Counted from the stretch's first letter, positions 1,011 through 20,964 are shown. The stretch: DNA of 64,000 bases from Lepidodermella squamata (GCA_047495785.1 JBLDXI010000009.1:4836001-4900000); one strand, 5' to 3'. Translations and numbers: made by a program. Notes: generated by a model from the sequence alone, not told the origin.

Positions 1011-1343
1011 ATGGCTTGGCTATTAACAACAACTTTCTTGATCATCGTAGCTGTTCACATTCGCCATGTAACATGCAACGGCTATATTGACAAGTTGAAA
1101 CAAACATCTCGCCATCAGTGTGCAAAATATTTCGGATTAGACTTCGTACCAACTCGGCAATTCATCGAAAAGCTGTCTGAATCAGGCGTTGTTCAATCAA
1201 GCAAACATGTTGTCATCAGGGGACTGCAGCTAGCAAGGCAATGCGCCGCGCTACCACTCAAAAAACGGCTTCAATTTTTGCAGCTTGTAGGCAGTTCGAG
1301 CAAGGCGGATCGGCAAACTCTCCAGCTGAAAGCTGAGCGTTGA
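1011..1343 (+). CDS. Small secreted Cys-motif array protein, member 1 (2-Cys subfamily)
   Basis: ATG 1011 gives signal peptide MAWLLTTTFLIIVAV; SRHQCAKYFG...CAALPLKKRL; AATAAA ~1448. Confidence 0.85.
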   Translation: MAWLLTTTFLIIVAVHIRHVTCNGYIDKLKQTSRHQCAKYFGLDFVPTRQFIEKLSESGVVQSSKHVVIRGLQLARQCAALPLKKRLQFLQLVGSSSKADRQTLQLKAER

Positions 1344-2021
1344 TCTATTATTACTTTACACTGAATGAAGAATCCTTGACCGATAATTCTTCGAAAATCA
1401 ATTGTTTCGCGATAAATCAATATTCAAAAGTGTCGTTTCATAACCTTAATAAATCAAAAATATTCCGCGTCTGTTGAGTTGCGAGAGTACTGTAATTCTC
1501 CAGCTGAAGATCTCATTAAATTTCAGCGCGGGGTACCTCTTCCACGAGAATTTCTTCCCGAGACCCGAGTTAAAATTTGATATGTGATATCTATCAATCT
1601 ATCGTGGCTCTTTTCTGCTTTCATTATTACAGATTACAGCTTGGAAATTTGGACCGCTAGCTCTCATGGGATGTGAAATCGCGGAGTTTAGACTTGATGA
1701 CGAATTTAATCATCTTTAAAGTCCCTTGACGGTTATTTATAGGCGCGCTGGTTTATTTTTTTCAAAACCAATCTATCATTATGAAAATTACCCTCTGCGC
1801 CATACCTTCAGGGATTCCATCAACGCATGCCAGATGTAAATTCTTGAACAATCCAAAAGGAATTTGCGCCAAGCTGATAAGTCCGAGAGTAACGTGACAC
1901 TAATGCACTGGGCTGTAATTGATATTAAATTTCTGTCTGCTTTGAAAATTTTTGCTTCATATTTATATAGCTCGTTTTGCATGGATTTTACAGTTTCCTA
2001 AAAATCGCATTATATTTTGAA

Positions 2022-2333
2022 ATGGCTGCATTAAACCTTGTCATAGCCGTGGCGCTATTCGCAAGTCAAGTGAAAGGCGACGATTTTCTAGCGAACTTCC
2101 GAGAGCAATCTTCACGCAGGCAATGTGCAAAGTTTTTCGGGTTGGAATCTATCCCGACTAGACGGCTGGTTGGTACAGATGCGAGACCCGTGGTTATCAG
2201 TCGGTTGGCGCGAACTTGCTTAGCCCTTCCAATAGAGAAACGTATCGCGTTCCTGCGCCTTGTCAGCGAAAAGGCGAGCAGTCTAAGCAAGCCAGTTTCG
2301 GCACAGTCATTCACCAGGCAATTAAAATTATAG
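2022..2333 (+). CDS. Array member 2 (2-Cys subfamily)
   Basis: Signal MAALNLVIAVALFASQVKG; SRRQCAKFFG...CLALPIEKRI. Confidence 0.85.
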   Translation: MAALNLVIAVALFASQVKGDDFLANFREQSSRRQCAKFFGLESIPTRRLVGTDARPVVISRLARTCLALPIEKRIAFLRLVSEKASSLSKPVSAQSFTRQLKL

Positions 2334-3549
2334 TTGAATATGATTTATCGTCTGCACAGTGATGCCACAATTTAGTCTCAATATTAAGCCTGACGGTTGG
2401 ATGCTTGGAAAAATCAGATATTTCAGGCTGAAGTTTAGTCTGCGGGAATGATTTGTGTACTTTCTGTTTTTCTTGTAAGCCGATTTCGGCGTTACGATTT
2501 GGTATTTGCTGAGCATTTAATGAGGCGTTAGAATAAACATCAGCGATTGCCAATAACCGTTTCTTCATTTCATAAGGTGTCGGTTGAATTATGTTTTCGT
2601 CGGTGATTTTTTGTGATTATGCGCAATTTTCTGGTTTGATTGCTAATTAAGCTATGGTATGGGGCAATGGGACATGGTGGCTTAGTTTCAGTATCTATGG
2701 TCTGAGGGCATATAGCTGAGACTGCGTAAATGTCCTAATAGTGACGGGAGACGGAACCAGGAACGGGTTCCCAAGTATGGTTCCCAAGTATTGGATCCTA
2801 CTTCTTTACTTATATTATTAAGGTCGTAGGGGAATGCCTCCGGTATCTTTCACAGGAGGAACGGTATCCTTCACAACTGCTAAATTGGTTCGGGCCAACA
2901 TTCTAACATCACAGGGTAGCAGGCAAAACTTTTAAAGTGACTAAGGCTGGGCCAAGGGCTCAGAGTACTAGGAATACTATTAGTAAAGGCGCTGACTGTG
3001 ATACGATAGCGAGGGACATGTGTGTAGTCTCCGCATCATCGAACGGCTGTGTCATGGTCCGAATTGCACGGGAATCGAGCAAGTTGCGAAACCGTGAATG
3101 CACTAAGGACGGATACGTTACGACAAATCTTCAAAATTCCTCTTCTTCGTCTCTATTCTCTATTTCATCCTTATGAAAACAACATATTATTTGAGCCTAA
3201 GCGATGTATAAACACGTCAACTTAACTACGGCAATACCGCAATTTCCTCAAAGCTGGTTCAACCAGGCGACTTTTTGAAATGGGCATAATACTGCGGAGG
3301 AGTATCAATCGGAAATAGTGAAACGTGAGTCAATGATAGAACGAGAAAGCCCAGGTGACTGTTGAACATCCTGTAAAGCTGTACATCACTCATTTCCTCC
3401 GTTTTCACCCACACTTGAAGGCCTAGCCGTAGCGTGAAAAATCGTCCGAGGCAGCTCAAGTTGTGGAAATCGACCCCCTTGCGTTACTTCCCTTGCAAAC
3501 AATTTTTCTAGCGATCAGTACAAAATCTCGACAGTTGCTTTCAGCCAAA

Positions 3550-3897
3550 ATGATTGTTAGACAGGCTGCAACTATAGGCTTGATTTTGGCCATGCTTTCT
3601 TGCTCAGATGGCTACGATTTTGTGTTCAAGCTCAAGCACCTAACCCGACGTCATTGCGCTCAAGTTTTCGGGTTCGATTTCATCCCAACACGCAACTTTA
3701 TCGATACATTGGCTCATTCAACTGTGATAAAGGCCAACAAGCAGTTCATATCTGCGCTGAGACTAGCAAGGCGATGCGCTCATCTGCCACTGAAGAAGCG
3801 ACTTCGATTTTTGATTATGGTTGGCAATTTGAAGGCAGCTAGAGTGAAAGCGAATGACAATTTACGGCCACGCAATGACACAAAAAGCGATGTTTGA
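3550..3897 (+). CDS. Array member 3 (2-Cys subfamily)
   Basis: Signal MIVRQAATIGLILAMLSCSDG; TRRHCAQVFG...CAHLPLKKRL; closest to member 1; AATAAA 3961. Confidence 0.85.
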   Translation: MIVRQAATIGLILAMLSCSDGYDFVFKLKHLTRRHCAQVFGFDFIPTRNFIDTLAHSTVIKANKQFISALRLARRCAHLPLKKRLRFLIMVGNLKAARVKANDNLRPRNDTKSDV

Positions 3898-4392
3898 TGT
3901 GTAATATGCTTGCCATTCATTAGTTTGTTGTTTTTTCTATTACCACGTTCCAAGTTCCAAAATAAAGCCTGATTCCTAATTATATCTAAGCATTGTCAAC
4001 TAGGTTTTCGAATTTTTCAGAAATTTGTTCTGTCCTACATAGGTATTTTCAAAAATTATTCCTATTCGAACTGAAAAGCTGATGGTTCCGGTTTCAACCA
4101 TTTCAACCACAATTTTATACATTGTTTCTAGCCATGTCTGCGAAATTCAAACTAGCTCTCATTAGGACCAAGAATCGTACCCCGCTAGCCTATAATAGTT
4201 AGTCTCACACCTCGCGCATTATTCAAGACTTCACACCCTAGAAAAGGAATCGGCGGATACTTATTGCCCACTGAGGCGTTATTCCGTTCCAGCCTAAAAG
4301 GAAACGTTAATGCAAAAGGTTTTCACTATTATTAAATATCCAGGCAGCTAACTAATAATTTCTAATAAAATAACCTACGCACTGGTCTGCGA

Positions 4393-4683
4393 ATGTCTCG
4401 GAATCGGAATACGATAGCTCGGTTCTTCGTGCTAGCTTTAACCATCGGAACCACATTTTCCCAGAGCTTATTCATAACGATGCTCGAGCACCACTCAAAA
4501 AATGCCTGCTCGACCTGCTTCGGGACGAATATCATCCCTACAGAGAAACTATTGGACGCTCTTCGTCTATCGCATCTCATGAAGCGGCCTACAATCTCAG
4601 CGATAGCGGCAACATATTACTGCGTGAAATCCCCACTAGCAAAGCGGCTACAAGTTCTGATAACTGCTAAATGTGTCATATGA
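4393..4683 (+). CDS. Array member 4 (4-Cys)
   Basis: Hydrophobic signal; SKNACSTCFG...CVKSPLAKRLQVLITAKC; AATAAA ~4708. Confidence 0.85.
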   Translation: MSRNRNTIARFFVLALTIGTTFSQSLFITMLEHHSKNACSTCFGTNIIPTEKLLDALRLSHLMKRPTISAIAATYYCVKSPLAKRLQVLITAKCVI

Positions 4684-4935
4684 TTGTGATTACGATTTGT
4701 GCGTGTAAATAAAATTAACTGGCCATTTCACGCGCGTATAACGTGACTATAAAGGGATCAAACGTCTTAGTAAAAGCGTGATTGCTATATTTTACATGTC
4801 AAGTGCGAACTATGATCTAGCCACCCACAGATTTTACTCTCAGAAAGGCTAATCCTGATGTTTCAATCGTTGTCGAGTTTTTGTCTTATCCATTTAACTT
4901 TTTCGGCAAAGAGAAAGTAAATACAGTTTTTCCGA

Positions 4936-5202
4936 ATGCTACGGCTAGTTTTGCTGACAGGGCTGATTCTGAGCATTTCAGCCCGGCCATCTGTGCTGAG
5001 TTCTCTGGACCAGAAAACGCGGAGTGCCTGTGCAAAATGCTTCGGTTCTAACGTCGTGCCAACTGCAGAAATGGTTCAAATGTACAAGCAAACGCGAATT
5101 TTTCGCGCGTCGTCCCACGCTATGGCATTTCGGTGCGCGATTTTGCCACTTAAAGACCGCCTGATTCTATTAGCAACAAGTTGTAGTAAAACTACGACTT
5201 GA
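4936..5202 (+). CDS. Array member 5 (4-Cys)
   Basis: Signal; TRSACAKCFG...CAILPLKDRLILLATSC; AATAAA ~5222. Confidence 0.88.
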   Translation: MLRLVLLTGLILSISARPSVLSSLDQKTRSACAKCFGSNVVPTAEMVQMYKQTRIFRASSHAMAFRCAILPLKDRLILLATSCSKTTT

Positions 5203-5478
5203 AAAGTGTGTAGTCGCACATAATAAACATCGATTTTATTGGCCTGAATCCAGTTCTTTTTCACGCTTCAATTAATGTCGTTTTGGCGTAGGAAGCCGCT
5301 CAATTACAGTTCATTGTTTTATTTCCAGGTATAAGTGCAAATGGACGTCGCGGTTATTTCCGGTTATGTAGTGCAGATTTTCAGGATTATGAGAGCATTC
5401 CTAAAATAAAACAAGGGGTCACGCCAACCTATAACCCACTCAATGTTCCGAAATTAATTTCAGTTTTTCAAATTAATC

Positions 5479-5784
5479 ATGCGGTTTTTTATCTTGATTT
5501 TTTGCATTGGCTTCGCATCGGCTATTCCACCAAAAATTTCCTCAGTTCTCGAGGAGAAAACGAGAGCTGGCTGTGCGAAATGTTTCGGCGCTTACATGGT
5601 TCCATCGCCTGAATTGATCGCTATTCTACGGCAGTCGCATCTGGTCAGCCGTTCTTCGATGAATGCTATGGAGATGGCTTTCGAGTGCGCTAATCAGCCC
5701 GTTATCCGACGTCTGCACTTCGTGCTCAGGTCAGGGTGCGTCAATTTACCGCGCGCCAAGACGCCTACGCGCAGCAATCAGTGA
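5479..5784 (+). CDS. Array member 6 (4-Cys)
   Basis: Signal; TRAGCAKCFG...CANQPVIRRLHFVLRSGC; AATAAA ~5829. Confidence 0.88.
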   Translation: MRFFILIFCIGFASAIPPKISSVLEEKTRAGCAKCFGAYMVPSPELIAILRQSHLVSRSSMNAMEMAFECANQPVIRRLHFVLRSGCVNLPRAKTPTRSNQ

Positions 5785-5958
5785 TTTGTTGTTTGTCTTG
5801 CTTTACTTACACAAGTGCTGTTTTACTTAATAAAGCCTAAATGAGCCGGATTATTAACTTCTTTCGTCAAAAGGAATCTTCGGAGTGCGTAGGTACAACA
5901 AATTATAGTCCGATCTCATTCCCGTAATATTTTTTCTGAATTTTTTTTCCGCGAAACA

Positions 5959-6210
5959 ATGCGCAGCTTCTCGATCTTCGCACTCCTCGTGTTCTGCTTT
6001 GCCTTTTTGGTGGCAGGGCAAATCGTGGCTGGGCAGTTTCGATTTGCTGGTGACGCCTCGCCACTGGAACGCTATGAGTACCAGAAAATGATGGCATCCC
6101 TCAAGGGCGAATCTAATGGCGGCAAGATTGCTTACAAAGACAAGCTGATTCCAAGCAAAGGGAAAAGTTCATCTCACAAACGAAGCTACGTCGAATATTT
6201 CGAAAAATAA
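5959..6210 (+). CDS. Small secreted protein without the Cys domain, embedded in the array
   Basis: Strong signal peptide MRSFSIFALLVFCFAFLVAG; Lys-rich mature part; KR before C-terminal SYVEYFEK. Confidence 0.65.
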   Translation: MRSFSIFALLVFCFAFLVAGQIVAGQFRFAGDASPLERYEYQKMMASLKGESNGGKIAYKDKLIPSKGKSSSHKRSYVEYFEK

Positions 6211-6379
6211 CAGACGTCATGCTGCGTAGAAAGAGTTGATTTCGAGAAAATTAGCTGCTCTTCAAGTTAATTAACTCATGCGTCTTAGGATACGCTCACG
6301 CAGTGGACATATACGTTTATATGTATTTCAGTTGAATAAAGTTTACCATCGATATGTTTTGGCACGTATTTCTAGCAAA

Positions 6380-6805
6380 ATGAGTTCATTTACTAGAAGA
6401 TATTTCTACATCGCAGGTTTGGGCATCTTCGCCATTGGTTTTGCTGAAAGTTTGCGAGTTACAGACCAGTATCGATATGGAAGATTCTCGGAGAGATTCT
6501 TGGCTAAGATGCCAGGTTGGACAAGTGCCAATATCTCGGCTTTTCTCACGACAGGACGAACTAACCTCATGCATAAATTCTACTATTCGGAGCGCGTGCA
6601 AAGCTTGACGCGAGCATCTTGCTTGAAATGTTTCGGCCCTGGTAGCAAGGTTATGTTGTCGCCGTTTGGAAGTGTCATCGCCGTCCATAATGTCCGCTAT
6701 CGTGGAGCTGCTAAAGGTGGACCTACAAATTACGTGCAATGCACTGAACTCCCAGTCGCTGATCGCATAGCTTTACTCGTCAAATACAAATGTAGTGTAT
6801 TTTGA
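6380..6805 (+). CDS. Array member 7 (4-Cys, long N-terminal pro-like region)
   Basis: ATG 6380 gives signal MSSFTRRYFYIAGLGIFAIGFAES; TRASCLKCFG...CTELPVADRIALLVKYKC; AATAAA ~6852. Confidence 0.85.
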   Translation: MSSFTRRYFYIAGLGIFAIGFAESLRVTDQYRYGRFSERFLAKMPGWTSANISAFLTTGRTNLMHKFYYSERVQSLTRASCLKCFGPGSKVMLSPFGSVIAVHNVRYRGAAKGGPTNYVQCTELPVADRIALLVKYKCSVF

Positions 6806-7258
6806 TTTTTTGGTACCTAAAAACAAGTCAAAAATCCCCAATTTTTTATTTAATAAAATGAGAATTTTTTCATGCAATGGAACAAGAAGGTTTTTTGACC
6901 TAATATCCGAGGAAGCTTCGAGTGGGTGCCTAAATGAGATTCCTAGGTCAATTAGTTAAATATTAGAGAAAATATCTCGTTTTTAAAGCTTCACTAGTGA
7001 TCCACGCTGCTGGCAGTGAGAGTACGTTGCTTCCCCTTATCACCGGACACAGCTGTCAATCAGTGCTCATTCCAAGTGGACAGCACGGCTTCATCAATAA
7101 CAATTAAATCATTAGATTTCAAGTCGTCTGGACATATCGCTCTCCAAACCGCGAATTAGTGTCAGCTCAATCAAGCGCATAATGTTCCGCGGCAGAGTGT
7201 CATCACTCGGTTATAAAAACGTCAAACAATTCACGCGGATTTTCATTCAAGATTCAAG

Positions 7259-7579
7259 ATGTTTCGATTATTTTACGTATTTATCCTGGCTGTTGTCGCT
7301 GCCCCGTTGCTAGCAAGCTTACTCGAGACGAGCGTTACTTTACCAATCCCTGCTAATGACTTGATGATACGATTGGATCTTATCACAAAATCTTGCTGCA
7401 TCAGATGCTACGTGCCCAAGGCCGACGCGCTGAAAGGTTACAAGAATCAGCTGGTCAAGCAAGTTCGAATTTTCCGGAAATTCATCGAAAGCATTACAAG
7501 CAAGACTGCACGGTGCTTCAAACTGCCTATACGCGAAAGAATCAAGATGCTAAAGAATGCCTCATGCCCCTGGTATTAG
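7259..7579 (+). CDS. Array member 8 (5-Cys, CCxxC)
   Basis: TATAAAA ~7212; signal; TKSCCIRCY...CFKLPIRERIKMLKNASC. Confidence 0.88.
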   Translation: MFRLFYVFILAVVAAPLLASLLETSVTLPIPANDLMIRLDLITKSCCIRCYVPKADALKGYKNQLVKQVRIFRKFIESITSKTARCFKLPIRERIKMLKNASCPWY

Positions 7580-8717
7580 GCGATTTGCATTTTATCACGG
7601 TTTCTGTAAGCTAATCAGTGTTGATTTTGTCATCGAGTGTAGCAATTGAAATAAATTATTGGCAATCGTTAATTTGAATTTGAAAGATTTAGTTTGGTTT
7701 AGATGCTGATTGCAGATTGCAGATTGCAGACAGTTGAAAAGATCGCTCAAGACCAGTGTGCGAAAGGATTGCGAAAGGATGCAGTTGAGGTGTTTTCTAT
7801 TACCTAACCGAAGAGGAAACCTTATATGAAACCTTACCGAAGAGCTTTTGGAGATCTGGCATCTGGCAGAAAAGGAAGCCTCTTGGTAATGCAATGGTTT
7901 CAAATGCATCGTATAGGAGGCCATGAACAACGGCCTATGGTTTATGTAACCTTACTTTATACCTCGCTCATAGATCTATGACCTCGCTGAATAATTCTGC
8001 CGAATAGTTTTGGACCTAGAATGCAGAGGATGCATGCTCCGACGAAATTCCCCGAAGATAATTAGAAAAGCTGAAATTTCTTAATTCTGGCTTTGAATTT
8101 TATGGTATACATTTCCCAGAATATACCAACTTTTTCATTTTAAAATTGCAAATTTTTTTGCTGGTTAGCAATATTTTTGCCTAAAAACTCTCCAGGTAAG
8201 ACATTTGATTCCTCCTTCATTTGTTTATTCCTTTCCATAGTATTTCATTTTTCGTTACTTTTAAATGGCACAAGCAAAGGCAACTTCACCGTAATAAACA
8301 TGGATTTTCCAATTCGATTAACGTAGATTAAGTTAAACATAAGGTAAGCAATTCAACTAATCATTTTATCACTTGTCAAAAATATTTTGCTAGCATGGCT
8401 TCTCGTTCCAGTCGTGTACAAAATGGCGCTGTTTCAGGCCATCAGTCCTGGAAATAATTTTAATGCAATGGCTATTTAGGACATGTACTGAACTGGAACA
8501 TATTCATAACTGTCAATTGCTGATTGCCTAAGTGGACAGGTTATAAAAAAATTAGAATCGGGCTATTAAACCTTCATTAGTATTACACATAGATCCTAAG
8601 TGGTTAAATTGTATCTCTACGCCAAGTTAAAGCGACATGTCACTCGTAAACATAATCGTAATATATAAACAGCGAGTCGAGTCGCTTTTTCATCGCTGAA
8701 GTTTCAATCTACGGAAA

Positions 8718-9038
8718 ATGTTCCGATTTCTGTTATTTGTGATATTTGCCCTGATTATTCCCGCGATTTTTGCAAGTAACAAACAAGCAACTGCCAGCTT
8801 ACAGACTCCAGCCTATTCAATCATGGCTCGCCTGGAACTAATAACGAAAGCCTGTTGTATCACATGTTTTGGGCCAGATATAAACTCGCTGACTGGCTAC
8901 GACAAACAGCTCATAAAACAAGTTCGAATATTTCGAAATTATATGGACAACGTCGCGCTGAGAGCCACGAAGTGCCTGCGTTCACCCATCAGAGACAGAA
9001 TAAAGATGCTCAAAGAGGCATCGTGCTCCTGGTATTGA
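8718..9038 (+). CDS. Array member 9 (5-Cys, CCxxC), paralog of member 8
   Basis: TATA ~8663; TKACCITCFG...CLRSPIRDRIKMLKEASC; AATAAA 9111. Confidence 0.88.
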   Translation: MFRFLLFVIFALIIPAIFASNKQATASLQTPAYSIMARLELITKACCITCFGPDINSLTGYDKQLIKQVRIFRNYMDNVALRATKCLRSPIRDRIKMLKEASCSWY

Positions 9039-9462
9039 GCCAAGCTATATTTTCTGATTTTTACACTGCGAACAAATTCTACCTATCATTGTTTTGAAGT
9101 CAATATTGTTAATAAAAGACAATTTTGTTCAGAAATCTCGGATGTGCGAAATATTACGCTGCAAGCTTATCAACATCAATTCCTTTTGTTTCTCGATTGA
9201 AAGCTGAAACTGCGGAGGGTGATTCTAAAGTGAGTAAAACACGTGAAGATATTGTTCCGGTCTTCAAAATACCCTTTCGCTGAAAAATGTCGCGACTGAG
9301 TAGCAGGTAGGGGAAAATACAGCTTTTATGAAATCGGATAATCCTCCTCTCACTTCCTTGCTTTGCCACCGCCTTGATGGACCCGGCCATCCGTAGGTAG
9401 TCAACACATCAAGCCGTGTCCTTTCAACATATTTTTCGATCACAAATCTAGTTCTAAAATAA

Positions 9463-9798
9463 ATGATGCCATTCAAAAGCACGTTTGCTATCCTCCTACT
9501 AATTTCAACTATTGACGGCGGTTATGCAGAATCGAATGTCGATCATCCTCAGGAATCTACCGAAGCGAAACTGAATGTGGCTCCTCATTTCGTTTCTTGG
9601 CTAAGGGATCGAACCAGACAGGCGTGTGCGAAATGCTTCGGCCTCCCAGATATTCCTTCTCCATCGCAAGCTGCTGTTTACTTGCAAATGCACTTCTTCA
9701 AGTCACAGCACCTTCCGCAGGCCAAAGCGTATGTCTGCGCTAATCTTAACGTCGTTGCACGCATGTCATACCTATCTGAAGCTGGTTGCATTTATTAA
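9463..9798 (+). CDS. Array member 10 (4-Cys, PxFxxW subfamily)
   Basis: Signal; PHFVSWLRDRTRQACAKCFG...CANLNVVARMSYLSEAGC. Confidence 0.88.
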   Translation: MMPFKSTFAILLLISTIDGGYAESNVDHPQESTEAKLNVAPHFVSWLRDRTRQACAKCFGLPDIPSPSQAAVYLQMHFFKSQHLPQAKAYVCANLNVVARMSYLSEAGCIY

Positions 9799-10776
9799 TC
9801 ATCAGGATTGCCAAGATGTTGGCTATTCGAACAATAAATAAGTTTTCTGTTAAGAACCGATTTTTGTGAAGATAAAGAAGTGAAAACGTTGCCTGGTCCT
9901 CAGAACTGTATTTTCTGATAATTGATCATCCAATCAAGTGACGTTCTATGGACTCACATTTTTAACCCATTTGCTTGCAACAAAGTTATCTTCAATTTCA
10001 CATATATGGGTTGATGTTTGATCAACTCGCCTTTGACTTTGAAAGAGTCAGGTATAGTTTCGCTCATTTGCTCATGGAATGTCTTCAGCGATGCAAAACA
10101 TTCTGACCCTAGCTTGTCAGTTTGAATTTGACAAGTGAATTCTTGTTTTCGCCTCTTTATTCATAACAGTTACATGAAAATTTATTATTTGGCACTTAGT
10201 CACCTTCAAACTGTCACTTTCAAACGTATAAACAAGTTTTCGGCCACGCTAAGATGGCTGAACTGGAATTTCGGCCATGATCCTGATGGTGTCAAAATTT
10301 AAACCTGCACAAAAATGATTATCGAATTATTTATATTCAATTGTAATCACGATGAAGTTATTTCGATGCATCTTCATGCTTCAATAGGTAATAACAGTCC
10401 CCAACTTGACAATTTGAAGCCTTGGGAATATTTGGCTTTGAAATATTAGTAAATACGATAATAACTCGAAATTGTTGTCACCTCGAAGTGAATTGTCCAT
10501 AATGTCTCATGAGCCGTGCTTCGGCAATTTTCTTAAATAAGGGCAAAAAGCAGCGTACAGGGCAAAACAAAGAATAAGTAGTACATCGATCTCAAACGAT
10601 GAAGATTTCATTTGAAAATGTTCATATCTGGGTTAATTTTGCTTATATTGACAGTTAATTATTGCTAGCTAATTGGGATGCTAATTGTTTGGGCAGTTTT
10701 CGCGGTTTGCTGTTAAATAAAAAAATGCAGGCATATTCTTGCAGTAGAAGCAATTTCCTTGTTTGCTATATAACCC

Positions 10777-11088
10777 ATGGTCGGAATTCAGGCAATTTTC
10801 GGTCTAGCATTTGTGCTAACTTGTGCCTCGGCTTTCAGGAAAACGACCGAGTTCTCAAAAGCTGCCAACCATGTCATGTTTCGGTTGGACCTGCAAACTA
10901 AGGCCTGTTGCAAGAAATGCTTTACAGTAAACTCAAAGCTATTCCGTGATGTAAGCACCTTCTACAGCCAAATTTGGTTCTTCAGAAGTTTAGCCGAGAG
11001 CTCATCGAAGCAAGCTGTGAAATGTTTCAAGCTGCCTCTTCACGCGAGAATCCAGCTACTACGCCACGCATCGTGCAACTTAATTTAG
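10777..11088 (+). CDS. Array member 11 (5-Cys, CCxxC)
   Basis: Signal; LDLQTKACCKKCF...CFKLPLHARIQLLRHASC. Confidence 0.88.
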   Translation: MVGIQAIFGLAFVLTCASAFRKTTEFSKAANHVMFRLDLQTKACCKKCFTVNSKLFRDVSTFYSQIWFFRSLAESSSKQAVKCFKLPLHARIQLLRHASCNLI

Positions 11089-11348: not shown

Positions 11349-11705
11349 ATGTTGAGGATCTCGGCCTTTGAATTTCTGATCATCATTTGCACTGCTGGGT
11401 CTTACTGCAGCACATGGGATTATGGACCAGTACTTCGAGGACCTTCAGCTCGCACTATCAAAATCGAATATCCTCAATTCGCTAGATGGCTTGATATCAG
11501 AACAAAGCAGGCATGTGTGAAATGCTTCAAAATCAAGGATGTTCCGACGCCGCAAGTTGCCCAGGCGTATTCTCAGCTCCTTTTCTTCAAAGGCCTTCGC
11601 GAGCAGAAGGTCAAAGCTTACGATTGCGTGCAAGCACATGTCTACGAAAGGATACGGATTCTTCAAAAAGAGGCGTGTATGGACATGCTGCGAAATGAGA
11701 AATAA
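11349..11705 (+). CDS. Array member 12 (PxFxxW subfamily)
   Basis: TATATAA ~11301; PQFARWLDIRTKQACVKCF...CVQAHVYERIRILQKEAC. Confidence 0.88.
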   Translation: MLRISAFEFLIIICTAGSYCSTWDYGPVLRGPSARTIKIEYPQFARWLDIRTKQACVKCFKIKDVPTPQVAQAYSQLLFFKGLREQKVKAYDCVQAHVYERIRILQKEACMDMLRNEK

Positions 11706-12416
11706 TCCTTTGGCACTGCAACTTGTTATTTCTTAGAAAGCTGGAATTATATAGTTTTCCGAAACAATAAAACTCTTGGCGGGTGTACCTACAGCGTTTT
11801 ATATATATTGATTATTCTAACCACTTCAAATAAATAATATGTTGATGGCATTTTCATTACGCCTAAGACGAGATAATATTTACTAAAACCCAATCACATA
11901 CACGACACTGACCTTTCCAGTAATTGCATTATTATATTGTCCACTTGCGATTTTGAGTGCATTCTGGTGATGGTCACTTCACCGGTTGAATCGGCACTTT
12001 TACGGAAATAACATTTCATGGTTTTATTCATGTTTTTCCTAGCTTGATTGAACGCGCCCTGTTTTTCAATTAGCAATCATCACGCATGACTCACTGCATT
12101 TTTTAAGAATTGCCGATTCTACTAATATCTCCATTTCTTTCGACAAGTATTCATTCTTCGCGATTTCTCGCTTGACTTTCTGTGCTACGCATTAGTTTCA
12201 AGTTGGAGCAGCATTCCACGCCAATTTTTCTCCTCCATACTAAAAACCTTTTTTGAGATTTCCCTTGAAATGAGGCTGCAGGGTGTAAAATTGGAGGCGA
12301 AACAGACCAAACGATATTTTGCTACGACATATTCCAGTCCCAATTCCCGATGAGATCGCCTTTGCTACCAAAATCCTACTGTTTTAAGTTTCAGCCATAT
12401 AGAATTATATAAAAAT

Positions 12417-12860
12417 ATGAATTTTCAGAAATTTTCAGTCTGGCTTTGCTACGCCATTGTGCTATGCTTGAGCGTTACATCAGCTTTCAGATCAACTATA
12501 GTTCATGGCTCGAAGAATCAAGGGCGATTTCGAAGCGGCCATATTTCGGGATTTCAGCTGTCTAAAATACCCCCGAATCAAGTTAACAATTTCAAGCATA
12601 GCAGCGAGGATCTTAAAATACCACCGCAATTCGTAGTCTGGCTACAGGAACAAACGAACCGAGCTTGTGCTCAGTGCTTTGGGCTGCAGGAGGTGCCATC
12701 GTCGACCTTAGCAGCAGTTTATCAGCAACTGCATTTTTTCAAAGCTCAAAACCTGCCTCAAGCCAAAGCTGTTGCTTGTTCAAAAATGGCGGCTGGAGCA
12801 AGGATAACATACCTGATCAAAGCTGGGTGCAACATACGTATAAACTTAACACCGCGTTAA
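12417..12860 (+). CDS. Array member 13 (PxFxxW subfamily)
   Basis: Signal; PQFVVWLQEQTNRACAQCFG...CSKMAAGARITYLIKAGC. Confidence 0.88.
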   Translation: MNFQKFSVWLCYAIVLCLSVTSAFRSTIVHGSKNQGRFRSGHISGFQLSKIPPNQVNNFKHSSEDLKIPPQFVVWLQEQTNRACAQCFGLQEVPSSTLAAVYQQLHFFKAQNLPQAKAVACSKMAAGARITYLIKAGCNIRINLTPR

Positions 12861-13741
12861 ATCCATGTTTAGAGTTAACTTTTTTGCGGCGAAGGTTTAA
12901 ATTTAGATCAATTAGTCAATAAATTTGAACGCGGTAAATGGCAGCGTATCAGTCAAATTCTTCATTGCTTGAAGAAACCCAAAACGACTACACTGAAATC
13001 AACTATGAGAGTAACTCAAAAACTCCGCCATTGCATTTGATTCAAAAAGAAAATCGATCCGACCTTAACTTCTATGCAAAATCGTCACTTTGAAGATGTT
13101 ATATTTATCCGGCATCTAACAGAATCTTCATTTGAGATAAATATCTGGTTTCAAATTTGAACATTTTCCTGAAATTAGCGAAACTCAATATTTCTGTTGA
13201 AGCTCACAAACATCGTGGATGCCTGGTCTCAATTAAAAACAGCTTCAACGCTCGAGGAAATCCACCGTCAACTTGTTTTCTGACCCATCAGAGTCCAAGT
13301 CTTTTTCATATATTAAATTTCCGAGTTTGAATGTTGCTCATAAATACATATAATTTCATATCGGTTGACCCAAAAGTAATGTACGTTGTAGTTCCTGATT
13401 ATTGGTTTGGGGTATTCAATCTTGAAACTTCACTGCTTTTGGGCTTTTTTAGGCTTATTCTTCTTGGATATTGGATATTCAATTTAGCTAGCTTCGAATT
13501 CCACGTGGATTGATGCTACCGCGTATGCTGGGAATTTCGCTAATCCCCAGCATTATTTAAATAATTTAGTACCTATTGAGTTCGAGTTATCGTCGATAAA
13601 AATAGTGAAGCATTATCTATCTTTACCCGCCCTTTTTGATTGTTTTCCCCCGTTGGCAGTAGCAACAGCGGCCGCATAGCGCGTAGGTGATACGTAACGC
13701 TAAAATAAATTCGTTTAAAATTAGACAACCCAGCAAGGAAA

Positions 13742-14187
13742 ATGATTTTCAACAAGCTTCTGCTGGTTCAGGCGATTCTATTACTAGCAGCACTGGACTG
13801 CAGTTGCGTCGAGTCTTCTACTTTTATCTCAACTCCCTTAGGTTCCAAGCACCGGTGGCTATCTCGAGGTAACGTGACACAATCAGACCTGGTAGCAACT
13901 GAATCGCAATCTAACCAAACTGCTTCAATCTCAGAGAATCCGTTGCAAGAAGAGAAGAAATCAAAATGGCTCCAATGTTTATGAAATGGATTCGAGAGCG
14001 AACGCGAAAGGCGTGTGCAAAATGCTTCGGTGTGGACGAAGTACCGCCTGCGATATTTGCGGCCATCTATCAGCACCTGCATTTCTTTAAGACTCAGCAT
14101 TTGCCCCAGGCAAAGGCATACAGCTGTGCGAACCTTCCCGTCGTAGCCCGCATCGCGTATCTCAGCCAGGCTGATTGTAAAATCTAA
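13742..14187 (+). pseudogene. Array member 14, frameshifted (pseudogene or homopolymer sequencing error)
   Basis: ORFs 13742-13984 and 13966-14187 together align with member 16; TC-A4-TG at 13961-13968 versus TC-A5-TG at 19228-19236. Confidence 0.75.
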
Positions 14188-14450
14188 CTATACATTGTTC
14201 AACAAGTTAGTGTTTCAACTGGAATTGTATGGAAAATAAAAAGTTTCCCGCGGACCCTAGGATCAGATTATTTCCGAAAGGTCCACCATGGTTTTCAAGC
14301 TTAAGCCGTCCTAAAAGCTCAAGTTATTATAGGCGAAGCGATCAAAAGCACGTCAAGTTATTGCTGTGTCTATGGTTTATAGTTTATAGATAGATTGTGT
14401 GAACGAATGTCCCGCAACCTCTAAGCCATGGAGAAGTAACATGAAACCCG

Positions 14451-14499
14451 CGAACTTTTATTTTCTTTTCTCGAACCATTTTAACTTAAAGCGTCGGAA
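14451..14499. repeat. MULE left terminal inverted repeat
   Basis: cgaacttttattttcttttctcgaaccattttaacttaaagcgtcggaa matches the reverse complement of 17182-17230 with 4 mismatches. Confidence 0.85.
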
Positions 14500-14640
14500 C
14501 CATCGGAATATTCAATTTTTATATTTTAAATAATAAGCATCGGAAAAGTCGCCTTTATATTTATTCTTATTTTCCGATGTGTTAAGACATTATGTTCGAT
14601 CAAATAAGTAACTTTCAAAGAGTCGCAAATTAAGACTTAA

Positions 14641-16997
14641 TTAAGAACGTCCCCGCCCCCGTCGGCGACCCGCGCCACGGCCGCGAGCAACCGCCGGAGC
14701 AACCAGCTCTTCTGGAAGCTCCACCCCGCGTCCACGACCGCGACCTCGGCTTCGTGTCATCGCTGCTGTAGCGGCAATCGGAGCATCTTCAACTGCCAGC
14801 AAATCAACTGATCCCTGTCCTCGTCCTGATCCACGGCCTCGGGGCCGCCCGCGACCTCTTCCTCGAACAACAGCGGGTAGTTGCTCCACTGTGGTGGCTT
14901 GTCCTCGACCACGTCCACGGCCGCGACCTCGTGCTCTAGAGCCTCGACCAATCGGTTCGGTTTCAGGAGGACCAGCAGGAAAAGTGGCTTCAGTAGCTGT
15001 TTCAGGAGCCATGCCAACCTGCTTAGCGAATTCCAGCGCACGACCGTGGCGAGGCGGCCTACCCCGAGGGTTACCGCGCAGCACCAGCGGAATCGACTGA
15101 AGATGTTTATCAATCGGTTTCGAATCCAGCTTGTGACCGAGAGCTACAACATGCTCGCACGGAATTTTCTTGGAACCTAAGCGGCACGTACAGCTGATAA
15201 GATTTGGCTCGGCAGTGATCAGTGAACAGAAGTCAATCGAACATTCAAATTGGGCCAAACTCGTCCACAAGGCTGTCGTTCGCGCTTCAGAAACAACACT
15301 GTTGACCTGCCAGCCAGGTTTCATAACGAGCCATGATGAGGGACCGACTTCTTCGAAGCACTGAGTGAAACGTAAAAACAGCTGGTAACCTTCTTTTTTA
15401 AGGCGGTCCGTTATCGCGGCTGACGTTGCGAACGGTTCTGAATTAACAACCCAACTCGAAATGACGTTGTCGGTTTTTGCCAAGAATGCGGTCAGGGCGT
15501 GAATCAATCGATGAGTCTGCTCGTTTTTGGTAACGTTGTTGAGGGATTCGTTGCCGTTATTAGTGCAGCAAAACTCTGAAGCCCCCTCGAACCAGTTAGC
15601 AAGAGGCCCGAAAATGTATATTGGCTCGAAATAAGCGACGAACTCAGCATAAACATCGGCGTGATCGCTGGCCGCCATCTCATCCTTGGCAAGCTGCCAC
15701 AACAGCAAAAACTAAAAATGAAAATTTTTTAATTTCGGAATATCTTAACACCGTCGGAATTACCTCAGGGCGTGACAATGCGAGCTGAACGAGCGTTAGT
15801 AGGTCGTGCACCTTGTACCACAATTTGATCCGACTCTCTGTAAACAAAGGTAAAATTGTCTTACGACCGTCGGAAAGAGGCAAATTACTTACGCCCAAAC
15901 CATTTCCGCGCGTTGAACTTCACATGAAAATAGCACATCAATCGTAGCACTGCTCCCTTGCCAAAGATTGTTTCGATTGCAGTAGTAATATAGCCCGCGC
16001 CATCTGCCATTACCGCCATCGGAAGATAAAGGGGCATAAACTTTCTCAAACTACGAAAAATGACCTCGTATGCTCTGCCGTTTTCGTTGCTCGCAACTCC
16101 GAGTAAAATGGGGTGAAACTTGCGGTTTTTGTCACTTGAGCCGCCAATAAAGACCTTGTGGCCACCCTGGATTACCTTGTGCGTGGCATCGATTTGGAAA
16201 CTTCTAGCGACGGCCAGAAGATTAAGGAGGAACGTGCAGCTAATGACAACTGCCCAGAACGGTTTCCTATCCTTGTTAGCCAGCGATTCCTCGACTTCGT
16301 AGTGGACGACATAAGGTTGTTTGTCATCGACAGGCTTCTGAGTTCGTGATTCGCACCAGGCACGAAGCTCGGCTGTTCCGAAAGAGCTTGAAAGCGCGTC
16401 AGGACCAACAGTTGCCATTCGATGTTTTCTCTTCAACTGTTGCTTCAAATTGGCGACTTGCCTCGTTGTCAGCTTTGGATTGTCTTTGATGAGCCGCTCC
16501 CTGATGTACTTGGGTGGATCATTGATATGATCCAGCACATATCGCCTCACCTCGGCTGTTAACACGCGTGTCGAATTGGTTGGATGCACATGAGCGCCGC
16601 CACACGAAAACACGGCTTGGTCAGGAGACCATTTGAGTACACCCCGATGGGGGCAATCCTTTGAGCCAGACTTCCGATGCTTACAGACGTAATAGCATGT
16701 TTGCTTGTTGAAACCGCTCTTCGTAGTGTCAATCCAGAGAATGCTGTAGTTCCGCTTGACAAAGTCCTTGGCTTCATGGAATGTAATGCCGAATGGCAAA
16801 GTTTCGAACAAATCAAACTCAAATTCATCTGTCGGCTTCGGGTCGGCAATAAAGTCATTTTCATCGTCAACCAGAGCAGGGTCATCTTCATCCCAGTCCT
16901 GATCTTGATTCTCGACCGACTGCCCATCGATAGCCTCGTCGGAGTCCTCAAATTCCTCTACACTTCCGTCAGATTCGTACAATTTCAAAAAATTCAT
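14641..16997 (-). CDS. MULE transposase, 3 exons (16997-15893, 15837-15764, 15711-14641), ~749 aa
   Basis: N-terminal C-C-H-H (WRKY/FLYWCH-like) finger; FQIDATHK, VMADGA, MCYFH (CxxH), TNNGNESLN (catalytic E); SWIM finger CTC...CEH; RGRG/GRP AT-hook-like tail; two GT-AG introns join the ORFs in frame. Confidence 0.9.
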
Positions 16998-17181
16998 GTT
17001 TCGAATGATGAAAAATGGGAGAATAAATTAATGTTTAATAAATCGTTCATTGCTGCTTCAATTTAGCGCGAATTCCGACGGTTTAAGGTAGTGTTACGAT
17101 ACATTAGTCGCGTGTTCCGATGAAATAAATCAAAACAAGTCATTCCGATGGTTTAATTTACTTTCCTTGCGATTTTTGTAT

Positions 17182-17230
17182 TTCCGACGCTTTAAGTCAA
17201 AATGGTACGCGAAAAGAAAATAAAGGTTCG
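17182..17230. repeat. MULE right terminal inverted repeat
   Basis: Reverse complement of 14451-14499 (45/49). Confidence 0.85.
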
Positions 17231-17629
17231 ATGACATTAGCTGAGTCCGCCATGGACATGCGGAATTTTTACTGCTCAAATTGTGTTGCTGACACCCGTG
17301 ACAGAATAGATTAACATCTTAAATTTGTCACTTTTCAAGCTTCATTCCCTTTGAGTAGGAAGCATGGACAGGCATGCTATGCATATCATGAGCAATACCG
17401 TGACCTGATGCATAAATTTGAAGTCTATTCTGAGAGAAATTGATTGAGTAAATTGATCAAGACACAGCCCAACAAGTGCTATAAATTAGCTGCACAAACT
17501 TGTTTAATACTTTGAACATGCAGACATTCAGCATTTAAGTCGCTCCTTTTCGACTATTTAAGCGACCTAACCACAAGCGACACAGAGTTTACAGCAGCAT
17601 AAATACAAAATTTTCAGTCACATAAGACA

Positions 17630-17995
17630 ATGCTGGTGGCACTTGTTACGTTTTTATCGTTTTGCTTGGCTTTAACGGAAGCTGAGCCACAACCACATGT
17701 TACTCCCAATCCAATCCAGTCAAGCGAAATTTCTCGCTCAGAAATACGGAATGGTCTTTCGTTTTTAAACATTTTTGCGTCGATTTTCGACTCGTCAACT
17801 AAAGAAGCCTGCGCGAGATGTTTCGGCGTCGATTGGCCGGCTACGGAGTTGATTCTGAAACAGCAACGTCTCTTCACTGGGTCGAACGACAGGAAAATCA
17901 TGCGAGCGGCTAATTGTATACGGCTGAGTGTCCTGGAACGTATGGCTTTTCTCGTCAAGAAAGGATGCCAGATTCCTGCGGCGATGAAATATTGA
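17630..17995 (+). CDS. Array member 15 (4-Cys, FDSSTKEAC subfamily)
   Basis: Signal; TKEACARCFG...CIRLSVLERMAFLVKKGC; AATAAA ~18048. Confidence 0.88.
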   Translation: MLVALVTFLSFCLALTEAEPQPHVTPNPIQSSEISRSEIRNGLSFLNIFASIFDSSTKEACARCFGVDWPATELILKQQRLFTGSNDRKIMRAANCIRLSVLERMAFLVKKGCQIPAAMKY

Positions 17996-19023
17996 CCTAG
18001 TGTGGTAAAACTTGATTAACGGTTAAAACGTCAAATTCGTTACCGGTGAATAAAATCTAGCACTTGTGCGTGAAAGGCTTTTTTGCTTAATAATTCCAAT
18101 TTCTCATATTCTTGAGCTAGCGGTGACCTTATTTCCAAAATTTTAGCTCGCGAAGTCAATTTGAAGCTTACACTGGGAAGATTCTGTGCGATAATCAAGA
18201 TAATCAAGATCCGTCACTTCCTTGATGAACTTGATGCGATTTTGATGGGTTTTCAAGGATCTATGAATTTTCACAAGTAAGTCAGTTCGATCATCATTGA
18301 TTGCGCATTTCTACCTGTGGCATTCTGTGATTCGTGAATCAATGTTAAGAGTTTATAGACTTCCAGACCCTCTTTCAGCGTGCTTTCTCCGGATGAGCCA
18401 CTCAGGGTTCCAGCAATACAGCTGTACTGTTCGCAACATTATACCCGCTGAATATCTAAATCTCATTTTTTAGCATTGATTAAGTAAACTTTGATATGCA
18501 GGGCCGATGTTCTAAAAGATCACCGTTTATCTTTTATCATAGTAATACCTCTTTTTTAGTATTCTATCCCAATTATAACAAAATGGCAAGTTAAGATTCG
18601 ATATTGAACTCATTGAACTCATTGTTTTTTTTTTAATTATTAGGGCAACGTGTTTTATCAACGTACAGACAGCGTCGAGTCAATGGCACGACCCGCGTTA
18701 ATTAAATTCGGTTCCAACGATTTCAATAACGATACAACATCGATACCTGACGAGGTTCAAGCTAATTTTAATATCTATATCAAAGTCGAATAAATATGTT
18801 TCCCCCATATGTTTGCAGGCGTACATTGCGTGAATCATGGTAGAAAGCTCACCCCTCAACATTGCTTTAATAATTCATTGCAAATTTCACTGGTGCAAAT
18901 AGCCACACAATCTATCTCCACCTGCAGTGTTTTCTCCCCTCGAAGTAGTAACAGTAGGCGTAAGAGCACCTGGGAGGAGCATAACATTGAAAATCAGTTT
19001 ACAATTTGGATTTTCCAAGAAAA

Positions 19024-19455
19024 ATGACATTTTTCAACATGTTCGTGATGGCGGTTAGTCTCTCAATCATTGGGCTGGCCTGCTGCAGCGCAGGACCTTC
19101 AGATGCTGGCTTAACTCCGTTAAGTTCGAAGCACAGGTGGCAGCCTAGAACCGAGATCTCAAAATCTAACCTGCTACCAAGCCAAACTACCCCGAAATCA
19201 GAAAAGTCTTTGCAAGCCGTAAAGAAGTCAAAAATGCATCCGATTTTCTTCAAGTGGATTCAGGAGCGAACGCAGAAAGCTTGTGCCATATGCTTCGGCG
19301 TGGAAGAGGTACCGCCTGCGATATTTGCAGCAATCTTCCAGCAACTTCATTTCTTCAAGGCTCATCATTTGCCGCAGGCTAGGGCTTACAGCTGCGCGAA
19401 TCTGCCTTTCGTTGCTCGAATGGCTTATCTCAACGAAGCCGGCTGCCGCATCTAA
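19024..19455 (+). CDS. Array member 16 (PxFxxW subfamily), intact paralog of member 14
   Basis: ATG 19024; PIFFKWIQERTQKACAICFG...CANLPFVARMAYLNEAGC; AATAAA 19505. Confidence 0.88.
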   Translation: MTFFNMFVMAVSLSIIGLACCSAGPSDAGLTPLSSKHRWQPRTEISKSNLLPSQTTPKSEKSLQAVKKSKMHPIFFKWIQERTQKACAICFGVEEVPPAIFAAIFQQLHFFKAHHLPQARAYSCANLPFVARMAYLNEAGCRI

Positions 19456-20598
19456 CTATTACCCTTGTTAGAATTTAGATCGAATGTATGATTTTTCAAG
19501 TTTCAATAAAACACTGTAGACACCGTCAAAAAAGCGAGATTGAAAAGAATTTTCTCAAAATAGCGTCCTGAAGCTTACAGTTATGCGCTCATTTCAATCA
19601 AGGTGGTTGATACATCAATAATTACTGATCGGAATAATTATTTGTGGCGTCCTTAATGTAATCTTTCGATATAAAGGCTAAGATTTTTTGAACGGAATGG
19701 CTAAAATGTTGTCCGATATAAATTTCGGCAATAATCACGTTTCGGCGAGATGATACGTGTAATTTCGAGTCACATGGATCATCTAATTTGTCGATTTAAA
19801 ATTATTTCATGATTTGCAAAGATCGTGATGAATATGTGGTTAGCTAATTCAGATACCGAGAACATTTGTGAGTAATAAGTAATGAGAAGTAATAATCTGC
19901 TCCAGTGCGACTTTGGGGATCACCCTAGGTGAACCCAGTTAAACGGGCCAGACAAGAAAATTAGAATTTATCCCACTGTATCGTTAATTTTGAGAGGTTT
20001 TCGAGCGTGTTTTAGTAGAAAACCTGCAACACGTTCTTGCTTCGCTCGTTTTTAAGTTGAAACGAGTAGACATTTTGGCAAAAGCAACAAAATTTGTTTC
20101 TATCCCTGGCAGCTCCGGGATTCAAGATCGCTCATCGATTTCTTCAGATTTCATTCGCAAAAGGTTTGATTAAACCTCAATGAACTTGCTTCGATGTATA
20201 ACAATGAGCAGCTCGATAACGATAATATAAATGCGAGATACATCTTTTGAAATCACAGAGATTTCTTCTGATAAGAAAGAAGGTAAGACTGGAAGCTGGC
20301 TAACAAAAGGTTCACTGTACCTATATGCGTTCACTTTTCAAGGTTTCACTGGCTTCAATTAGAGTAGAAATGATTTCACTCCCTCGGACTTGGGGCAGAC
20401 ATCACTCGGTACTCTGTGACCTATAGGAACTTCAAGACTTGAGCATGAAAGTCAAATTTATTTCAGAGATAATTGATTGAGTTAATCAAGATGAGCCTGG
20501 GGACTAAAATTAGCTTCATTAATCGGATAAATACATGAAATACGTACGATGCACTTTCGAAGCCAGACTTGTATCTTTTCCTCACAGCGAAAAAAATT

Positions 20599-20964
20599 AT
20601 GTTAGCAGCACTCATTACTCTTTTATCGTTAAACTTTGCCTTAGCTTCTGCTGACCTACACCAAAATTATGTTGCTACAAATTTCCAAGCTAACGAAATA
20701 TCTCGATCAAACAAATTGAGTAGTCAACCATTTTTAAGCATTTTTGCTTCGATTTTCGACTCGTCAACTAAAGAAGCTTGTGCAAAATGTTTCGGCGTCG
20801 ATTGGCCGGCTACGGAGTTGATTCTGAAACAGCACCGCCTCTTCACTGGGTCCAACGATAGGAAAATCATGCGCGCGGCTAATTGTGTACGGCTGAGTGT
20901 CCTGGAACGCATGGCTTTTCTCGTCAAAAGTGGATGTCAGTTTAATACAGCGATGAAAAACTGA
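20599..20964 (+). CDS. Array member 17, paralog of member 15
   Basis: ATG 20599 gives signal MLAALITLLSLNFALASA; core nearly identical to member 15; AATAAA ~21008. Confidence 0.88.
   Translation: MLAALITLLSLNFALASADLHQNYVATNFQANEISRSNKLSSQPFLSIFASIFDSSTKEACAKCFGVDWPATELILKQHRLFTGSNDRKIMRAANCVRLSVLERMAFLVKSGCQFNTAMKN

Follow-up and report, generated by a model that had tools for sequence, protein, structure and literature searches.

Small secreted proteins stabilised by disulfides and encoded in tandem arrays make up much of invertebrate defence, signalling and secretion, and several of their scaffolds are now useful tools. Saposin-like proteins (SAPLIPs; NK-lysin, the amoebapores and the nematode caenopores) have about 80 residues and six Cys forming three nested disulfides, in which the first Cys is paired with the last. 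Nonspecific lipid-transfer proteins (nsLTPs) are plant proteins with a fixed eight-Cys motif. The chemosensory proteins (CSPs) of arthropods have about 110-120 amino acids (aa) and six helices; two of their four Cys form a CxxC, and each disulfide joins Cys that are neighbours. Eclosion hormone, crustacean hyperglycaemic hormone/ion transport peptide (CHH/ITP) and Aplysia attractin have six Cys; in defensins, knottins and Kunitz proteins at least three disulfides knot a fold that is beta-rich or alpha/beta. Here we describe a tandem array of 17 genes, with an 18th gene elsewhere, in 64,000 nucleotides (nt) of DNA from Lepidodermella squamata (GCA_047495785.1, JBLDXI010000009.1:4836001-4900000; hereafter the window). 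The genes encode small basic proteins with a signal-like N-terminus and a conserved core of, in most members, four Cys, numbered C1 to C4. We file them as a new family within this familiar kind, the small secreted disulfide-stabilised proteins of tandem arrays.

The array and its genes

The census of the array combines a listing of open reading frames (ORFs) over positions 1-22500 with a six-frame scan for the signature C-x2-[CYFV]-[FY]. The listing gives 17 plus-strand ORFs between the first ATG at 1011 and the last stop at 20964, and the scan found no extra convincing copy within 1011-20964. Sixteen of the array genes are intact and one (member 14) is frameshifted; together with the dispersed member 18 they form the repertoire. 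The members are listed below, with core scores from a hidden Markov model (HMM) of the family core, AATAAA distances in nt past the stop and TATA positions relative to the ATG.

1011-1343, plus strand: member 1, 110 aa; two-Cys form with C2 and C4 replaced and a long basic C-terminal tail; core HMM E = 1.6e-23; AATAAA at 105
2022-2333, plus strand: member 2, 103 aa; two-Cys form; HMM E = 1.4e-17; the sole member without AATAAA or ATTAAA within 200 nt of the stop
3550-3897, plus strand: member 3, 115 aa; two-Cys form, basic tail present; AATAAA at 64
4393-4683, plus strand: member 4, 96 aa; four-Cys core; AATAAA at 25
4936-5202, plus strand: member 5, 88 aa; four-Cys core almost directly after the signal peptide; best match in the window for the outside proteins P0002 and P0003 (see below); AATAAA at 20
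5479-5784, plus strand: member 6, 101 aa; four-Cys core; AATAAA at 45
6380-6805, plus strand: member 7, 141 aa when read from the ATG that yields a signal-like start; long spacer and 4 extra residues past the CFG motif; HMM E = 1.6e-19; AATAAA at 47
7259-7579, plus strand: member 8, 106 aa; five-Cys form, the extra Cys directly before C1 (C1-1); TATA at -47, AATAAA at 71
8718-9038, plus strand: member 9, 106 aa; five-Cys form, sister of member 8 (100% bootstrap); TATA at -56, AATAAA at 73
9463-9798, plus strand: member 10, 111 aa; four-Cys core, used for the AlphaFold2 model; AATAAA at 35
10777-11088, plus strand: member 11, 103 aa; extra Cys at C1-1; AATAAA at 66
11349-11705, plus strand: member 12, 118 aa; four-Cys core; TATA at -48, AATAAA at 61
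12417-12860, plus strand: member 13, 147 aa; long spacer, four-Cys core; AATAAA at 58
13742-14187, plus strand: member 14, with one frameshift that puts signal-plus-spacer and core in two frames; core otherwise intact, with the top core score in the window (E = 3.2e-32); AATAAA at 48
17630-17995, plus strand: member 15, 121 aa; modelled at full length; AATAAA at 54
19024-19455, plus strand: member 16, 143 aa; nearest paralogue member 14 (core 76% identical); AATAAA at 50
20599-20964, plus strand: member 17, 121 aa; nearest paralogue member 15 (core 89% identical); AATAAA at 44
42381-42763, minus strand: member 18, outside the array; two coding exons, 42763-42524 and 42470-42384, plus stop codon

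A hydrophobic stretch follows the first ATG in 16/17 array members, with a 10-residue Kyte-Doolittle maximum of 2.2-3.65; that of member 14 sits in the separate N-terminal piece, in the other reading frame, and the two pieces of this gene were analysed apart. AATAAA lies 20-105 nt past the stop in 16/17 members; the background frequency per random 150-nt window is 22% on the plus strand and 7% on the minus strand. TATA-like motifs are found 47 to 56 nt upstream of the ATG of members 8, 9 and 12. The nuclear-receptor DNA-binding domain and the C-type lectins of the window (below) mark its source as an animal; the genome is compact, at about 42% GC, and introns are few and short (about 53 nt). 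The interval is best explained as an old tandem array of separately transcribed genes whose coding parts would each be a single exon.

Member 18 shares the design of the array genes: it has a signal-like N-terminus, four Cys, an Arg eight residues after C3 (C3+8), C4 at C3+16, a TATA about 55 nt upstream and an AATAAA downstream. It has one intron of 53 nt (GTAAGT...TTTTCAG), directly after the CFG motif, and its C2-C3 segment spans about 13 residues versus 28-38 in the other members. Scored singly against the core profile among 1566 segments, its two exons gave E = 0.031 and 0.0045. Adjoining it on the plus strand, at 41475-42038, is an ORF with a nuclear-receptor C4 zinc finger (Pfam zf-C4, E = 1.4e-6).

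An earlier reading of this DNA from its sequence alone (hereafter the sequence-only reading) had described 17 same-strand, intronless genes over 20 kb, each with a signal peptide, most with an AATAAA of their own and several with TATA boxes. The count, the strand, the N-terminal hydrophobic stretches and the motifs are all borne out. The absence of introns holds for the coding parts of the 17 and fails for member 18; to be added to that description are the frameshift in member 14 and a Mutator-like (MULE) transposon between members 14 and 15.

Six family members, with start codons at 3550, 5479, 6380, 12417, 17630 and, on the minus strand, 42763, have a TTTCAG motif resembling a splice acceptor 5-45 nt ahead of the ATG; members 8, 9, 12 and 18 have a TATA at about -47 to -56 instead. 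The pattern suggests introns in the 5' untranslated region, or trans-splicing, in part of the family. Between members 6 and 7, a plus-strand ORF of 83 aa (5959-6210) combines a signal-like N-terminus with a Lys-rich body; it has neither a Pfam match nor the family signature, is unrelated to the array family, and may be a further small secreted-protein gene.

Scaffold, predicted fold and comparison with described families

The core has about 70 aa (about 8 kDa), an isoelectric point (pI) of 8.9-11.6 and a net charge of +3 to +14. In a MAFFT alignment of the array members, C1, C3 and the Arg at C3+8 are invariant in 17/17, and the Phe at C2+1 (Phe in 16, Tyr in 1) and the Leu at C3+12 (16/17) are nearly so. 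Position C1-4 is Thr in 14 members and Ser in 3, and position C1-3 is Arg or Lys in 15/17. C2 is Cys in 14 members and is replaced by Tyr, Phe and Val, once each, in members 1-3; Gly follows at C2+2 in 14/17. Leu at C3+3 and Pro at C3+4 each occur in 12 of the 17. Fourteen members have C4, at a distance of 16-17 positions from C3, and members 1-3 have none; members 8, 9 and 11 have an additional Cys at C1-1. Most positions outside this scaffold vary among paralogues.

From these observations we use a working definition of the family: a signal peptide, a variable spacer, Thr or Ser at C1-4, C1-x2-C2-[FY]-G, C3, Arg at C3+8, Leu at C3+12 and C4 at C3+16/17. Fourteen of the 17 array members show it in full, members 1-3 lack C2 and C4, and member 18 has a shortened C2-C3 segment. 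With so clear a definition, a well-defined family of this sort can be sought in unannotated genomes. The scaffold given by the sequence-only reading is accurate as to the Thr/Ser at C1-4, the invariant Arg and the basic character of the core; the CxxC is limited to 14/17 members.

The joint loss of C2 and C4 in members 1-3, set against the invariance of C1 and C3, makes it probable that the disulfides run from C1 to C3 and from C2 to C4, in a crossed arrangement. An AlphaFold2 model of the member 10 core, built on the 17-sequence alignment, reached a predicted local distance difference test score (pLDDT) of 87.8 and a predicted template modelling score of 0.72, with pLDDT values of 82-88 over five models. 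The helical core expected by the sequence-only reading appears there as four helices, at residues 2-17, 26-38, 44-52 and 56-65. In this model, helix 1 ends with C1 (residue 14) and C2 (17) and helix 3 with C3 (51); helix 4 contains the invariant Arg (59) and is followed by C4 (68). Member 15, from a second subfamily, was modelled at full length: a signal helix comes first, then a spacer of low confidence (18-40), and the four core helices recur, helix 1 beginning about 20 residues before C1. The conserved residues would thus sit at helix caps, in the turn after C3 and in the packing of the core. We consider it quite probable that the proteins contain a secreted, disulfide-stapled four-helix domain.

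The sequence-only reading could not match the Cys spacing to saposin-like, defensin, knottin, insulin or Kunitz families, and three kinds of search likewise gave no described family. An hmmscan of the 17 members against Pfam-A at E <= 1 gave nothing relevant; four single-member matches (Flg_bbr_C, DKCLD and two domains of unknown function, E 0.006-0.17) were taken as noise. A sequence profile search of PDB at E <= 10 gave no match, and precomputed Pfam matches for the relatives outside the window (below) were blank. Foldseek searches of PDB with two models, a method that is weak on small helical proteins, returned best E-values of 1.5-1.6 and template modelling scores of at most 0.34, and among the matches listed there was no saposin, insulin, lipid-transfer, chemosensory or hormone fold.

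The closest described systems were also compared one by one. Like SAPLIPs, the proteins are small, apparently secreted and all-alpha, with a CxxC in helix 1 that would be tied by disulfide to the C-terminal part; SAPLIPs also have cationic members and, in invertebrates, multigene clusters with defence roles. The family has, however, four Cys in a putative crossed pairing, C1-C3 and C2-C4, in place of the six nested ones; with two Cys in members 1-3, C3 and C4 16-17 apart, no Pfam SapB match and no PDB sequence match, SAPLIP membership was rejected on sequence and Cys pattern. Nematode insulin-like clusters are similar in comprising many short signal-peptide genes for helical, disulfide-linked products that keep little beyond a Cys scaffold. 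The insulin/relaxin superfamily was nevertheless rejected: there is no Pfam match, the Cys pattern is another one, there is no consistent dibasic site and no B-chain/A-chain arrangement, and pI is uniformly basic. Defensins, knottins and Kunitz proteins were rejected since the core is predicted to contain alpha-helices alone and no more than two disulfides, again with no Pfam match.

Type 2 nsLTPs (nsLTP2) resemble the predicted products in being basic, secreted, four-helix, disulfide-held proteins of about 7-8 kDa from large tandem families, and the clade of members 8, 9 and 11 also has adjacent Cys-Cys. The nsLTP/bifunctional inhibitor superfamily was rejected on its eight-Cys motif, as against four Cys here, and on the absence of a Pfam match; with no support from Pfam or from the Foldseek matches listed, the link is an analogy at most. 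CSPs of the OS-D family and helical hormones or pheromones are likewise secreted and all-alpha with few disulfides, and CSPs have exactly four Cys with a CxxC. OS-D chemosensory and odorant-binding proteins were rejected as there is no Pfam match and the core, at about 70 aa, is predicted to form four helices; CSP, eclosion hormone, CHH/ITP and attractin were absent from the Pfam results, the PDB sequence search and the Foldseek matches listed. Orphan secreted families of such a kind are common in invertebrate genomes, and this one answers no long-standing question alone.

Relatives outside the window and evolution of the array

A full HMMER search with the core profile against 1.84 billion representative proteins recovered four unnamed clusters of true relatives (P0002-P0005) with E-values of 1e-12 to 2e-6. 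All four consist of a signal peptide, a spacer and the core, all retain the invariant C1, C3 and Arg, and all satisfy the working definition. They come from only three ENA metagenome assemblies, on eukaryote-like contigs of 37-40% GC that also encode pieces of ubiquitin-E1, a Cys-loop receptor and, in pieces, an alkaline phosphatase. There are one or two family copies per contig, with a tandem pair on contigs L001 and L002, and additional family members were not found on these contigs. In reverse phmmer searches, the four outside proteins jointly recovered 17/17 of the array ORFs and nothing else among 1566 six-frame segments, with E-values reaching 3e-12. Since the outside proteins pick out exactly the 17 ORFs, chance is excluded as an explanation of the resemblance. 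We are in very little doubt that this is a real gene family.

A further candidate at E = 5e-4, the Cys-free P0006 of 641 aa with its five repeats, was rejected because it matches only about 20 profile positions, around FG...P. Beside the family gene on two of the relatives' contigs (L003 1608-1886 and L007 179-457) is a 92-aa ORF with a signal-like N-terminus that is unrelated to the family.

Other searches for relatives returned little. A word-indexed protein search gave no match with the 17-member alignment and only P0004 with the 23-member alignment. Scans of JGI metagenomes gave 119 pattern matches with a 4-member alignment and 392 with P0002 alone, none of them confirmed in either case (0 of each). 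Neither the window proteins nor close relatives of the neighbouring genes were found in the public protein collection. Short single-exon eukaryotic genes are easily missed by annotation, so the apparent rarity of the family is a lower bound; the case shows annotation and protein databases overlooking such genes.

The sequence-only reading had called the repertoire lineage-specific, which is too strong: relatives exist on eukaryote-like metagenome contigs, and in a neighbour-joining tree the window members are not monophyletic with respect to them (2% bootstrap for the window group). We take this to mean that the family predates the source lineage. Chances are about even, in our judgement, that it is an undescribed family and possibly a new small fold, namely a cationic four-helix domain with crossed disulfides on a CxxC in an 18-gene repertoire, kept in a poorly sampled animal lineage, and present but overlooked in other micro-animals so far known only from metagenomes. 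If so, its products would be a new invertebrate class of secreted effectors or ligands.

The array itself is old: its paralogues are 18-75% identical at the protein level and synonymous sites are saturated in most pairs. Reading frames are intact despite this saturation. In the closest pairs, only the core coding sequence is similar at the DNA level, up to the stop codon and no further. The flanks are too diverged for similarity to be detected, and neither repeated flanks nor terminal repeats surround the units. The ratio of nonsynonymous to synonymous substitution (dN/dS) was measured only for the two pairs with unsaturated synonymous sites, in which it is 0.08 (members 14/16) and 0.19 (members 15/17) for the core and 0.41-0.62 for signal plus spacer. 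The core is under purifying selection and constraint on the spacer is relaxed. This is contrary to the diversifying selection that the sequence-only reading had proposed; relaxation is confined to the N-terminal spacer.

Neighbour-joining recovered the clades {1,2,3} (96% bootstrap), {8,9,11} (98%), {10,13,14,16} (100%) and {15,17} (100%). As these are partly interleaved along the array, duplication did not proceed simply between neighbouring genes. Members 14/16 and 15/17 resemble a duplicated two-gene unit (13963-14191 / 19231-19459 and 17715-17997 / 20684-20966), and the synonymous divergence (dS) of the two pairs, about 1.55 for 14/16 versus 0.33 for 15/17, is about five-fold apart. Either separate duplication events or gene conversion acting on 15/17 would account for this gap.

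Function and genomic neighbourhood

The best explanation of the whole, which we hold with somewhat less than even confidence, is an old repertoire of secreted, disulfide-stapled cationic mini-proteins in which a rigid scaffold carries varied surfaces. Each precursor would comprise a cleavable signal peptide, a fast-evolving and probably disordered spacer of about 0-60 residues, and a conserved cationic domain of about 8 kDa with four alpha-helices. In the domain, a long first helix would end with C1 and C2, at a spacing of three residues, and have the Thr/Ser one helical turn before C1; Phe-Gly would cap helix 1, a Pro would open helix 2, Leu-Pro would form the turn after C3, and the invariant Arg and Leu would lie in helix 4. 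The array would then hold differing surfaces on one rigid secreted cationic scaffold, long maintained by purifying selection, a reading that follows from the difference between paralogues at most positions outside the scaffold. The charge may stick the proteins to anionic targets, for example microbial envelopes or mucus. The sequences show the genes, the family, its conserved core and the lack of known relatives, and from them we infer secretion, the disulfide pairing, the fold and the scaffold with varied surfaces; as to function, a role as extracellular binding proteins of a host-defence or surface-protection type is the leading guess, possible and offered tentatively.

Several points weigh against this repertoire of binding surfaces. 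The signal peptides were called from hydrophobicity alone, and the alignment behind the structural model contains only 17-23 sequences. The joint loss of C2 and C4, from which the disulfide pairing is deduced, amounts to one evolutionary event, as members 1-3 form one clade (96% bootstrap). No gene neighbourhood is common to the window and the relatives' contigs, and with the weakness of Foldseek on small helical proteins a remote tie to a known helical family is possible. Finally, purifying selection on the core and the long retention of many distinct paralogues suit a family of ligands at least equally well. On that reading each paralogue would be a secreted signal (hormone-, cytokine- or pheromone-like) for a receptor and the spacer would be a pro-region, comparable to the nematode insulin-like clusters or to helical pheromones and hormones of invertebrates. 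This is in keeping with a predicted core that is small, helical and disulfide-stapled behind a fast-evolving segment, with the one or two copies per contig in relatives elsewhere, and with a short motif common to the spacers of members 14 and 16 and a Lys-rich stretch just before the core. Against ligands stand the lack of a consistent dibasic site before the core and members 1-6, in which the core comes directly after the signal peptide. The uniformly high pI is atypical for hormone families, no Pfam match links the proteins to insulin, eclosion hormone, CHH or pheromone families, and no receptor gene is consistently linked, a Cys-loop channel gene adjoining one relative only. We therefore regard ligands as unlikely, while taking them seriously.

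Less probable again is a structural or gland-secretion role, for instance in mucus, egg envelope, cuticle or adhesive, where the proteins would bind to or cross-link an anionic matrix, in some cases through a free Cys. In clade 8/9/11 the Cys count of the mature protein is odd and the additional Cys at C1-1 is conserved, which would allow covalent dimers or cross-links; the cores are basic, the Ser/Thr/Pro-rich spacers could be O-glycosylated, and the window is rich in Thr-rich mucin-like genes. Yet such neighbours may be a coincidence, the repeats or low-complexity body of most matrix proteins are missing here, and a compact folded scaffold with an invariant Arg resembles a binding domain more. 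Carriers of lipids or small hydrophobic molecules, with four helices round a small cavity in the manner of nsLTPs or chemosensory proteins, would fit the gross features that are generally known of nsLTP2 (about 8 kDa, basic, four-helical, disulfide-stapled, secreted, tandem multigene). With only two disulfides, no Pfam match to the LTP, OBP or CSP families and no such structure among the Foldseek matches listed, we consider this improbable indeed. That there is no gene family at all, and that the ORFs are chance frames, decayed pseudogenes, exons of one large gene or parts of mobile elements, might be argued from the absence of the proteins from public collections, the frameshifted member and the transposon within the array. 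This fails on the sequence evidence: the units each have an ATG with a signal-like start, a stop and an AATAAA of their own, dN/dS is far below 1 while the flanks no longer show any similarity, the units are not bordered by repeated flanks or terminal repeats, and independent homologues of the same build exist elsewhere. We give it next to no credence, and retain the repertoire of secreted binding proteins as the preferred reading.

As context for that reading, the other genes of the window appear to be extracellular and lineage-restricted (C-type lectin/WSC mucin-like receptors). The transposon and these neighbouring genes are as follows.

14426-17255, minus strand: MULE-type DNA transposon that separates members 14 and 15 and does not belong to the family
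35443-37272 (minus strand), 43432-44854 (minus), 46938-48647 (plus) and 52359-53804 (minus): four WSC-in-C-type-lectin paralogues
34258-35274 (minus strand), 48991-49509 (plus) and 51112-52329 (minus): Thr-rich mucin-like ORFs that adjoin lectin genes and have a hydrophobic membrane-anchor-like end
27169-29265 and 31574-33858 (both plus strand): two paralogous receptor-like genes, each of 2-3 ORF pieces with gaps of about 80-180 nt

The MULE element has imperfect terminal inverted repeats of 74 nt (78% complementary), and GC climbs to 48% there; the called ends of the repeats show no clear target-site duplication. Its transposase matches Pfam MULE (1.4e-6) and SWIM (1.7e-4), and the coding region is interrupted once by a frame change, which may be either an intron or a break. 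Scans of the window for Rfam families and tRNAs gave no match.

In the lectin paralogues, the Pfam order is the first part of Lectin_C, WSC, then the last part of Lectin_C; behind this WSC-nested domain the proteins continue with another C-type lectin domain and a mucin-like stretch rich in Thr. The single database relative of these genes is P0001, at 50% identity, from Logan run SRR23086389. The Thr-rich mucin-like ORFs, which have no Pfam match, may be further exons of the lectin genes. The gaps within the two receptor-like genes are probably short introns; their products contain Cys-rich, fibronectin-like and membrane-anchor-like segments, and a weak cEGF match is their only one in Pfam.

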